DNA of 64,000 nt. Source: Salpingoeca rosetta (taxonomy: Eukaryota > Protista > Choanoflagellata). Positions 23,497 through 32,743 of the stretch are shown one piece after another. Below the pieces are notes generated by a model. That model did not search any database. It was not told the DNA's origin and worked only from the letters and a program-made list of their open reading frames with translations. The stretch is taken from contig JAWQFM010000014.1 of NCBI GenBank assembly GCA_033442325.1, positions 1,329,184 through 1,393,183 on the forward strand. The letters run 5' to 3'. A program made the position numbers and the translations under genes. Numbering within the stretch: position 1 is the first letter of the stretch; each line of letters begins with the position of its first letter.

Positions 23497-26400
23497 TCAG
23501 AGCCGGTCGAGGAGCTCGCTGGCGGCGGGCGGGTGCGGTTTGGTCATGCGCTTGCGGGCGCGCACGGCGGCGACGGCCTGGCCAGCTGGCGTGGCCGGGT
23601 CGAGCGGGTCGCCCTCCACCATGGCCCAGTGGCCAAACGTGGTGGTGGGGAACGCCTTGCCAGACGTGGCGCGCATGAGGTTGCTGTTGAAGCCAAAGGA
23701 GCGGGCAACAGGCAGGTGCGCGCGCACCGTGTGCAGCGGGGTGCCGGCCACAACCGTCTCACCAACAACAGCGCCACCGCGGTCCTTGAGCACGCGGCGA
23801 ACACCGCCCATGCCCTCCTGCGGGACTGTGTTGAGGGCGACAACACGTGGGGGTGGGGAAGAGGAAGCAGACGGTGAGCGTGGTGTGATGACTTGTGTGT
23901 ATTTGGGGCGATGATATGGTCAATGAAACACACAATACAAGGAACAAAAGCTGGTGTGTGTTTCTGCTGCATTGGAAAGTACGCGCGCCCACAAAGATGC
24001 ACACAAACACACTTGCACAAAGATACATCCACTTTCACTTGCGCACACTTTGACACACACACACACATACGCAATGCACAATACACACATACACATACAC
24101 ACACGTACACGCAACACAAAAACACACACATATACACACACCTTGGATGGTGACAGCAAAGATGGGCTGGAGGAGGCGCGGGTGCGCGGTGAGGACGGCA
24201 CCATGGAAGGCGCGCCGGGCCATGGGCAGAATCTGGTCCACCCGGCGGTGCACAGAGTCCTGGTGCAGCCGTGCATCCGTGATGGAGAACACCACGCCAC
24301 GAAGCTCCTCGTGGCACAGCACGCTGCCAGCGCACACGTCCTTGAAGGCGGTGACCACCATGTCCAGGATCGGGTTGAGGTCCATACCAACCGTCTCGTC
24401 AACCAGCACGTTGCTGCCGCACATGGCCACCACCTTCTTGGCAAGTGCGCGGTCCGCGCCTGCGGCAACGAGCGCCGCCGTGCGGGAGGCCGTGTCCATC
24501 TGCATGCTCACGCTGCCGTCGTCCAGCGCAGCTACGAGGTCGTCGCTGGCAGGGCGCGCCTTCACGTACAGCCGGTTGTGCTTGTTGCTGCTCTTGGCCA
24601 AGCACACCTGCGTGCTCTCCTGCGCCACGCCCTCGCAGTACTGCACGGCCGGCTCCGTGGCCACCACGCTGCAGCCAACCGCCTCGGACAGCGCGTCCAG
24701 GCACAGCTGCACGTGCAGCTCGCCCACCCCGGCCAGGATCTTCTCGCCGGTGGCGCTGTCCGTGTAGCACAGCACGCACGGGTCCTCCTGCTGCAGCGAC
24801 TGCATCGCCTGCTGCAGCTTGGTGGCCAGGCTCTCCTTCTTCGGCCGCACAGACACGCGCACCACGGGCGACACGCTGAAGCGCAGCACCTTGAGCGGGT
24901 GGGCCGCCAGCGTGGAGGTGAGCGTGCCAGCCTTCACCACGGCGCCGTCAAGCCCGAGCACGCCAACAACCATGCCGGCCCTCCCCTCCTTGATCGGCTG
25001 CATGCGGCTCGCCATCACCAGGCGCAGGCCCTTGACAGACACGGGCACAGCGCCGCGCACACGCCCGCCGCTCTTGGCTGCACTGCTGCTGCTGCTGCTG
25101 CTGCTGTCGTCGTCGTCGTTGGTGCGTGGCGGCGTGTAGTCTGGGTCCAGGGCGTGCAGGGTGTCACCAACGCGGACTGTGCCGCAGAAGACGCGGCCAA
25201 AGCCAATCATGGCCTTGCTCTGCTTGGACACGCGCACCATCTTGGTGATGAAGACCACGGCCGGGCCGTGGGGATCGCAGTGCTGCATGGCCCTCACCAC
25301 ATTGCGCTCGCCTTTGCTCATCACGTCTTGTTCGTCTTCAGCCGCCTTATCGCCGTCATCGTCAACAACGCCCTGGTAGCTGTGTCATGATTTGTAGTTG
25401 AGGTGATGGTTGACAGCGTGTGAGTTGGGCAATGGTGGGAGAGCAAAAGGACAAAGGAACAGGAAAAAGGAACAAGGGAGCAAAGCAGACACACACACAC
25501 ACACACAAACACACACGACATACACGAGACACACACACACACACACACACTCAAAGTTCACACACGCGACACACATGCATACACACACATGCATACACAC
25601 ACACACGATACACACACTCAAACAAACAAACACGAGCAGGCGTACATGGCGTGGACGCGGGCGGGCTGTGCCTCAAGCGGCGATGGAAGGTGGTCGTCGA
25701 TGAGGGCCAGCAGGGCGTCAGCAACAGGCAGCCAGGCCTTCATCATCAGCTTGCGCAGGGGCTTGAGCTCGCTCTCCCGCTTCTGCGTCTCCGTCATGGC
25801 GGCAGCGACGCCGAGCGTGCCTGCAAGCTTGAGCAGCGCTGCGCGGTCGCCGGACGACTCCGCGGCGTGCACGGCGTAGATGGGCTGCAGCACAACGGCG
25901 CAGAACGTGCGCTGGTGGGCGCTGCCGTCGGCGTTGAAGCCCTGGTCGCGCCGCCACTTGCCCGTGGACGGGTCGACAAAGTAGTCGCCCCACAGCCGCT
26001 TGGTCAGCTTCATCACCTCCTCCGAGGCGCGGTGCGGTGCCGGTGGCGCGGGCGTGCCTGCCTTGGTTGCCTTGGCCGCCTGCTTCTTCTGCACCAGGGC
26101 TGCGCCAATCTGGGGCAGGGTGAACCCCCAGCCGTACAGGCCGCTGCCAAAGCCGACGGTGCCCTTGCACGGGTCCACGGTGAAGTCAACGCCCTCGGGC
26201 TGGTATGTCTCAATGAGCTCGTTCACGCTGTCGATGGTCGCAGCGACCTTCATGTACGCGTCTACAACAACAAAAACAAATGGTTGGGCAAAAAAGGACA
26301 GCAAAGAGGGAAGCGACAAAGGTTATGTACATCCAACAAAACAGCATCAAAGCCACAAACACACATCTGCACACTTGTTCACACATGTCTCCACATTTGC

Positions 26401-27132
26401 ACACTCGTTCACACACACACATGTGTACACTTGTTCACACACACATGTGTACACTTGCTTACACACCCACACCCACACCCACACCCACACCCACACACAC
26501 ACAATGCGCACACCTTCAGGGGTTGCCTGGAGCTCGGTGATGATGCGGTCGAGCTTGTTGAGGAAGAGGACCGGCTGCACGTGCTCGGCAAGGGCTTGGC
26601 GCACAACCGTCTCCGTCTGCACGCCAACGCCCTCCACGCAGTCCACAATGACAAGCGCGCCATCGCACACCCGCAGGGCCGTGGTCACCTCGCCCGAGAA
26701 GTCGGCGTGGCCCGGGCAGTCAATCAGGTTGACGCGCAGGAAGCCTTCCTCGTTGTTGCGGGGCGGCGGGGCAACGACGGCACCGTCACGGCAGCGGCCT
26801 GGGGCCACCCCGACGCGGGCAGCCCAGTCCGGGTAGTGCAGGCTGATGCCTGTGGACTTGATGGTGATGCCGCGCTCTTGCTCGGCGGCCTCCGTGTCCA
26901 GGGCGAGCGCCTTGCCCGCCTTGGCGTCGTTGAGGACACCGGCACGCGACAGCACAGAGTCCGCCAGCGTCGTCTTGCCGTGGTCCACGTGGGCGATGAT
27001 GCACACGTTGCGCGTCACCGCAGTGACGCGGTCCTCCTCACACCGGAAGATCACATCTTGAACTTGTTGTTGTACTCGGTCGTCTCGGCGGTCCTTAGCC
27101 GCGAAAGGAACAGTTGCCCTCCATGTTCTCAC
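23497..27132 (-). CDS. Divergent eukaryotic elongation factor 2 paralogue
   Basis: G1 [28 protein letters not shown]; eEF2-type [75 protein letters not shown]-terminal LDRL*. Four large exons; start codon unresolved. Confidence 0.9.
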
Positions 27133-27498
27133 GGAGGGCCGGTGAAGGCTTGAAGGGGGTGGGAAAAGCGGGGAGTCGGGTACACGACTCAGTCAGTCAG
27201 TCAGTGGCTTTGAGTACATTGATGAAAGGAAAGAAAGATCGCTGTGTCCTTGGGCCTTTGTAGCTTTGTTGATTGCTGAAGGAAGCGGTGAAAATGCGAT
27301 CACACCCACAGTGAACTTTGCTTGTTGTGTGCTTTGTGTGGCGGCTTGCGTGGTGAGTTATGGAGGACTCTGTAATTGTCGTCGTGTAACAAGTGAAGCA
27401 AGCAGTGAGATGAGTCATGTCACATCTCATTCACAGGGAGCCAAAAATAGAAGGGGGCGTGACTGAGAAAAGAACTGATTTAAGACGAAGAACTGAAT

Positions 27499-32743
<5,245 letters not shown>

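Follow-up and report, generated by a model that had tools for sequence, protein, structure and literature searches.

EF2L, an apparently undescribed family of eEF2 paralogues with a remodelled diphthamide loop in Salpingoeca rosetta and its relatives

Introduction

Few features of translation are as well conserved across eukaryotes as the elongation factor eEF2 with its diphthamide and its kinase site. Here, we describe a four-exon gene for an eEF2-type GTPase on the minus strand (23497-27093) of a 64,000-nt window of a Salpingoeca rosetta contig, i.e., the whole stretch of DNA that was analysed and to which the coordinates below refer (G+C about 55%). The diphthamide loop of the encoded protein reads HRRVDQ, where canonical eEF2 has HRGGGQ.

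For the eukaryotic cytoplasm, a survey of translational GTPases lists only eEF2, Ria1/EFL1 and Snu114 (Atkinson, 2015; PMC4342817). Narrowe et al. (2018; PMC6143161) report paralogues of EF-2 (aEF-2p) from archaea only and an altered eEF2 (G703N) only from parabasalids lacking dph genes. The tip motifs disappeared when EFL1, Snu114 and the archaeal aEF-2p left elongation (PMC6143161). Studies in Chinese hamster ovary (CHO) cells showed that the exchange G717R prevents the first step of diphthamide formation and gives toxin resistance while protein synthesis is apparently unaffected, and that the modification fails with G719R too; as a speculation, the authors proposed that the positive charge of diphthamide could be mimicked by Arg717 (PMC2816718).

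The S. rosetta paralogue shares with canonical eEF2 (yeast 1N0U; human and rabbit 80S structures) the five domains, the G'' subdomain, the G motifs, the SNKHNR loop, the H-x-D-x-x-H-R core and the C-terminal helix, but differs from it by R-x-D in place of GGG, Pro for E658, Leu or Met for Thr56/57, a separate deep clade and, in its relatives, a short N-terminus. As in the CHO mutants, the positions G701 and G703 (yeast numbering; mammalian G717 and G719) are changed, and the Arg at +2 is identical, but the CHO changes are single, culture-selected and set in canonical eEF2, whereas those of the paralogue are natural, fixed in a clade, combined with Asp at +4 and set in a diverged protein. In aEF-2p and the parabasalid G703N variant, too, a second or altered EF-2 has a diphthamide loop that departs from the canonical form. 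Those cases, in contrast, occur in hosts without dph genes, with the tip motifs lost in aEF-2p, whereas S. rosetta has DPH genes and a canonical eEF2, and its paralogue keeps the tip core. With EFL1/Ria1 and Snu114/EFTUD2 it has in common that it is a eukaryotic offshoot of the EF2 family with the same domain order, but those two lack the target His loop.

A literature search by locus tag, for eEF2-like or eEF2 paralogue proteins and for choanoflagellate eEF2 duplication found no description of this branch. We use the name EF2L for the family of eEF2-like paralogues with an RRM/dsRBD insert; the family is conserved, seems not to have been described before, and shows a diphthamide loop remodelled in a fixed way. 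The S. rosetta gene is a real and intact member, which probably encodes a ribosome-binding, translocase-type GTPase dispensing with diphthamide.

Results

A remodelled diphthamide loop is fixed in a clade of relatives

The original prediction had placed the exchange of HRGGGQ for HRRVDQ at 24221-24268, and this exchange is real: the six residues are encoded at 24233-24250, and the predicted range falls within a 22-residue stretch (24212-24277) inside a 429-codon minus-strand open reading frame. The translation also bears out that the target His (24248-24250) is kept and that the Gly at +2 is Arg, so that the canonical pattern H-x-D-x-x-H-R-G-G-G-Q is absent from the paralogue.

A HMMER scan with exon 3 returned relatives at 45-67% identity, compared with about 40% for canonical eEF2, and every relative closer than canonical eEF2 carries a loop of the pattern H-R-R-[A/V/G/I/P]-D-[Q/S]. 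Arg at +2 and Asp at +4 after the target His occur in all aligned clade members (13/13), i.e., the proposed conservation of HRRVDQ among relatives was found as H-R-R-x-D-Q/S. Overall, the relatives are 46-71% identical to the S. rosetta paralogue and come from five named choanoflagellate transcriptomes, among them those of Microstomoeca roanoka, Salpingoeca infusionum, S. urceolata and Choanoeca flexa (EukProt transcriptome-derived models with ORF or Trinity headers), and from many unnamed, uninterrupted 3-kb metatranscriptome contigs. Their presence in such models and contigs shows that the relatives are expressed. The list of carriers is not to be read as absence from Monosiga brevicollis, animals or other groups, since the second and third word-index searches extended it little: that with P0014 (insert plus G domain) was dominated by canonical eEF2 and gave no further taxa, and that with P0011 added only Snu114 anchors and a few names. 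The ESM Atlas showed only generic eEF2, EFL1 and Snu114 clusters.

Conservation was read from 131 columns of an alignment that included 80 eEF2 sequences with HRGGGQ; each of these columns is at least 97% invariant. The S. rosetta paralogue keeps 109 of them (83%), with 37/38 in the G domain, 12/12 in domain III, 8/8 in domain V, 18/26 in domain II and 21/32 in domain IV. Only two canonical-invariant positions were refixed to another residue throughout the 13 clade members, as G701R and G703D (yeast numbering); near the tip of domain IV, 11 of the 13 have Pro for E658. No aligned clade member has lost the first decoding-site loop (SNKHNR), although its final Arg is Lys in S. urceolata, and H694, D696, H699 and R700 of the H-x-D-x-x-H-R core are likewise kept, with Q704 changed to Ser in one member.

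Apart from the loop, the Thr in RFTDTR (Thr56 in mammals, Thr57 in yeast), which is the residue phosphorylated by eEF2 kinase, is lost: S. rosetta reads LALDTE, and the clade members shown have Leu or Met. The S. rosetta genome contains two genes with an alpha-kinase domain (G000:C7:1848128-1848769 and G000:C12:1529986-1530642).

The paralogue is of eEF2 type and sits beside canonical family members

The earlier statement that the GTPase motifs G1-G4 are intact holds and extends to G5, since the S. rosetta paralogue reads AHVDHGKT (G1), RGITI (G2), DCPGH (G3, with the catalytic His of DxPGH), NKLD (G4) and SGLYGW (G5). All five EF2 domains and the archaeo-eukaryotic G'' subdomain are present. 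Domain searches were run with single exons or with the public protein PTSG_12302 (XP_004993937.1, F2UA81; a "hypothetical protein" of 1471 aa, here labelled P0001), whose C-terminal 920 residues correspond to the eEF2-like gene.

Compared with solved structures, P0001 576-1471 aligns end to end with mammalian eEF2 17-858 at 653 bits, against 320 bits for Snu114 and 310 bits for EFL1, and exon 3 alone gives 258 bits for eEF2 (the best relatives, 7.7e-76), 120 for Snu114 and 84 for EFL1. This agrees with the proposed closer likeness to eEF2 than to EFL1 or Snu114. An identity as EFL1 or Snu114 was rejected, as both have separate loci and reach only half the bit score of eEF2. The Snu114 locus lies on contig C4, where the EFTUD2 N-terminal domain PF16004 adjoins its EF2 domains (C4:1346647-1347463) and occurs only there; PF16004 was not matched in the paralogue gene. 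The EFL1 locus, whose sole solved relative is EFTUD1 (5anb), lies on C8.

Within the S. rosetta assembly (55.4 Mb, 68 contigs), the expected canonical eEF2 with HRGGGQ was found on a separate contig, C35, and, together with the EFL1 locus on C8, matches what the original prediction had called for; the paralogue is 44% identical to this host eEF2. The expectation of DPH1-7 elsewhere in the genome held for DPH1, DPH2 and DPH6 and for DPH3/DPH4, the latter represented by two CSL zinc-ribbon loci. By gene content, the paralogue is thus placed beside a complete canonical eEF2 system.

Gene structure

Four coding blocks were found by reading the three minus-strand frames from 28500 to 22500. Their translations occur in P0001 at 552-744, 746-949, 951-1362 and 1364-1471 with one split codon per junction, and the three introns (252, 266 and 316 nt), all GT..AG, leave about 930 codons open. 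For domain II, Pfam gave matches below threshold only. The features are, in the order of transcription:

27094-27516, minus strand: 423-nt GT..AG intron predicted by the public model, which joins the upstream PH-RhoGAP-SH3 gene to the eEF2-like part; an intergenic spacer is the alternative reading
26514-27093, minus strand: exon 1, G domain with G1-G4 (Pfam GTP_EFTU, 6.7e-46; P0001 552-744), beginning at the acceptor of the public model
26262-26513, minus strand: intron, 252 nt, GT..AG, rich in TG microsatellite; the junction codon GAG G|AC fits ATPEDAYMK of the public protein
25646-26261, minus strand: exon 2, G5 and the eukaryote/archaea-type G'' subdomain up to the start of domain II (P0001 746-949); aligns with eEF2 in the full-length PDB match
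25380-25645, minus strand: intron, 266 nt, GT..AG; junction HAIYQG, the same in the relative P0151/P0155
24142-25379, minus strand: exon 3, domains II, III and most of IV with both decoding-site loops (Pfam EFG_III and EFG_IV; P0001 951-1362)
24233-24250, minus strand: HRRVDQ, the altered diphthamide loop, from the translation; His codon (CAC) at 24248-24250
23826-24141, minus strand: intron, 316 nt, GT..AG, with TG microsatellite; the junction VTIQVPQEG aligns with canonical VEIQCPEQ
23497-23825, minus strand: exon 4, domain V and C-terminal helix ending ELLDRL, with stop codon (Pfam EFG_C, 7.1e-12; P0001 1364-1471)

The three introns consist mostly of TG/CA microsatellite (GTGTGT... tracts), which accounts for the long spurious open reading frames on both strands in mechanical lists.

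The 5' end and the integrity of the gene

The public model PTSG_12302 fuses a PH-RhoGAP-SH3 (GRAF/oligophrenin-like) gene, which extends up to about 31000, onto the eEF2-like gene. The frame of this upstream gene meets its own stop at 27499-27501, 15 nt past the proposed donor (27516). Between that stop and the G1 motif the eEF2-like frame contains no in-frame ATG, and a scan of 27094-27560 for an ATG mini-exon spliced to any acceptor before G1 found none. Close relatives start with MSSVTRNVC, and S. rosetta reads VTAVTRNVC, i.e., Val at the position of the Met. This 5' end could be read in three ways: the fusion may be real, translation may start at a non-AUG codon, or the copy may be silent.

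The last of these corresponds to a decaying duplicate or annotation artefact, in which the start codon was lost and no protein is made from the S. rosetta copy. Such a fate would fit the missing ATG, the Val in place of the relatives' Met, and a public model that requires a 423-nt intron free of the TG repeats typical of the gene's other introns. However, about 930 codons are open across three correctly spliced introns, the invariant residues are kept, and with 0.18-0.21 the terminal branch of S. rosetta does not exceed those of its nearest, transcribed relatives in length. Short branch and open frame both speak against decay, and we regard this explanation as highly improbable. At the level of sequence, the gene is intact and conserved, and its altered loop is not a private or chance change.

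The wider EF2L family carries an RNA-binding insert

The clade members P0005, P0007, P0160 and Choanoeca flexa P0161 contain about 200-240 extra residues between switch I (RGITI) and G3 (DxPGH). Pfam matched an RRM in this insert of P0005 and P0007, and a DND1-type dsRBD was matched weakly, below threshold, in P0005. An insert at the same place is also present in more distant eEF2-like proteins, which carry the following loops:

Stephanoeca diplocostata, insert-bearing eEF2-like protein: HRSAAQ
Acanthoecidae sp. 10tr, insert-bearing eEF2-like protein: HRSGAQ
Cafeteria, insert-bearing eEF2-like protein: HRRDNQ
Rhizochromulina marina, insert-bearing eEF2-like protein: HRRTAQ
P0014 (EukProt entry), insert-bearing eEF2-like protein: HRGPRQ

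The inserts alone match one another in BLASTP (1e-7 to 1e-17), and on its sequence the insert is a shared derived character independent of the tree. The copies of S. rosetta, S. infusionum and S. urceolata have only 33-51 residues at this site (51 in S. rosetta), and the Microstomoeca model is partial and does not cover it. The RRM plus dsRBD-like module is thus missing from the S. rosetta copy; since the flank motif YP-W--R-G is common to this copy and the insert-bearing relatives, the pattern suggests a secondary loss in the S. rosetta lineage, and the insert was probably lost more than once. In an environmental eEF2-like relative of 1130 aa (P0101), the RRM plus dsRBD-like module stands at the N-terminus and not in the G domain, as if it had been moved.

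Trees were built without the insert columns, with support given by the Shimodaira-Hasegawa-like approximate likelihood ratio test (SH-aLRT) from quick searches. The HRRxDQ clade was recovered with 94-99 SH-aLRT and falls, apart from canonical eEF2, into a supergroup (99 SH-aLRT) with acanthoecid, stramenopile, diplonemid and Telonema sequences; the canonical eEF2 of S. rosetta groups with animal eEF2, and the paralogue does not. Approximately unbiased (AU) tests, run under LG+G4 only, rejected joining the clade to holozoan eEF2 (p 0.0009) or to opisthokont eEF2 (p 5e-5), whereas monophyly with the acanthoecid group was not rejected (p 0.16). A recent, choanoflagellate-specific duplicate of eEF2 was rejected by the same tests. 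The view of the gene as a lightly altered back-up of the host eEF2 did not hold in the light of these tests, of the 44% identity and of an old, fast-evolving family with ancestral RNA-binding domains.

Further altered loops were observed among eEF2-like sequences. Diplonema papillatum P0264, Flectonema neradi P0106 and Artemidia motanka P0109 carry HRGP[A/S]E, in which the conserved Gln is Glu; the diplonemid proteins and Telonema subtile P0080 group with the paralogue supergroup and not with canonical eEF2. P0102 of the animal Seison nebaliae (855 aa) reads HRRAGQ and is placed with the divergent eEF2-like sequences; it may be an eEF2 that evolves fast or a further paralogue. The metatranscriptome sequences P0162-P0170 form a tight group of 839-aa eEF2 with HRGGNQ, i.e., G703N, as given by Narrowe et al. 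for dph-lacking parabasalids. Moreover, giant-virus eEF2 genes (P0171 and P0178; Fadolivirus and 'uncultured virus') have HRGGGQ and cluster with environmental altered-loop eEF2 variants.

Discussion

A probable translocase-type GTPase predicted to dispense with diphthamide

The reading that we favour is that S. rosetta EF2L binds the ribosomal GTPase centre and that its domain IV would enter the A site as in a translocase. By analogy with the G717R and G719R mutants, its His would not be converted to diphthamide by Dph1-Dph2; that it stays unmodified is expected because both diphthamide-blocking positions are changed, with Arg at 717 and Asp at 719. The fixed Arg may supply the positive charge normally given by diphthamide and thereby partly replace its role in the decoding centre, and the loss of Thr56/57 would free EF2L from control by eEF2 kinase. 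The ancestral RRM plus dsRBD-like insert suggests an RNA-directed or condition-specific use and not bulk elongation.

Several observations weigh against this reading. Only 18/26 invariant columns of domain II and 21/32 of domain IV are kept, and the EF2L family evolves about three times faster than canonical eEF2, so that activity in translocation cannot be taken for granted. The G717R data come from an eEF2 that is canonical in all other respects, not from an EF2L background. The S. rosetta gene has no start codon of its own, its sole ATG-initiated model being the fusion to the RhoGAP-SH3 gene. Moreover, long-branch attraction can place fast-evolving sequences too deep, and an archaeal fragment was drawn into the same group in one tree, which leaves the depth of the EF2L split uncertain.

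Some of the same features could also be read as those of a neofunctionalised ribosome-associated GTPase that no longer translocates and acts, e.g., in subunit maturation, hibernation, rescue or quality control. The fast evolution and deep separation from canonical eEF2, the remodelled tip of domain IV with the loss of E658, the lost kinase site and the RNA-binding insert of the relatives would all be in line with such a role, for which EFL1, Snu114 and the archaeal aEF-2p provide precedents as EF2-family paralogues with other functions (PMC4342817, PMC6143161). The clade, however, keeps the first decoding-site loop and the H-x-D-x-x-H-R core, unlike EFL1, Snu114, Tet and aEF-2p, and 37/38 invariant columns of the G domain; on account of these retained loops and columns, domain IV is expected still to read the A site. 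A complete departure from translocation consequently appears rather unlikely to us, and translocase-type action is favoured over a wholly new role because the clade retains tip motifs that were lost in EFL1, Snu114 and aEF-2p.

Toxin insensitivity as a side prediction

The original prediction had pointed to the Gly-to-Arg exchange as a known change that blocks diphthamide and confers toxin resistance, which is in agreement with the CHO data (PMC2816718). With an unmodified His, EF2L would be no substrate of diphtheria-type ADP-ribosylating toxins, and toxin insensitivity is, by analogy with these mutants, a reasonable side prediction.

It is a different proposal that EF2L is kept as a back-up translocase for immunity to bacterial ADP-ribosylating toxins and takes over bulk elongation when eEF2 is inactivated. 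This would account for the classic resistance substitution in a protein that retains the His, the GTPase motifs and most invariant residues, and several of the named carriers are indeed bacterivorous flagellates (choanoflagellates, Cafeteria). A bulk translocase is normally under very strong constraint, yet the paralogue evolves fast and shares only 44% identity with the host eEF2, and the family ancestrally carries RNA-binding domains. Moreover, one point change in eEF2 itself would give equal immunity. Other branches, one of them a photosynthetic dictyochophyte lineage, replaced the Gly triplet in their own ways (HRSAAQ, HRRTAQ, HRGPRQ), and this variety across the wider family points to another task at the decoding site, and not to escape from toxins, as the driver. 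How fast the family evolves, its ancestral RNA-binding module and the loop variety among the sister branches all speak against a simple toxin-proof spare copy; the back-up proposal is in our view quite improbable, and defence against toxins is unlikely to be the purpose of EF2L.

A wider proposal and its implications

Taken further, EF2L might represent a fourth ancient cytoplasmic branch of EF2 beside eEF2, EFL1 and Snu114, ancestrally equipped with an RRM plus dsRBD inside the G domain and patchily distributed in marine flagellates, which would act as an RNA-guided or condition-specific, diphthamide-free and toxin-immune translocase outside the control of eEF2 kinase. We put this forward tentatively, as a possibility that is less secure than the translocase-type reading of the S. 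rosetta gene.

A third paralogue lineage besides EFL1 and Snu114 would be a natural experiment on the purpose of diphthamide, and the closest living relatives of animals might use EF2L as a new level of translational control. The finding also cautions against treating eEF2 as a single-copy phylogenetic marker in every protist. Because S. rosetta can be manipulated genetically, the predictions for EF2L, i.e., no diphthamide, no ADP-ribosylation and binding to the ribosome, are directly testable. The finding is of clear interest for research on translation and on choanoflagellates.

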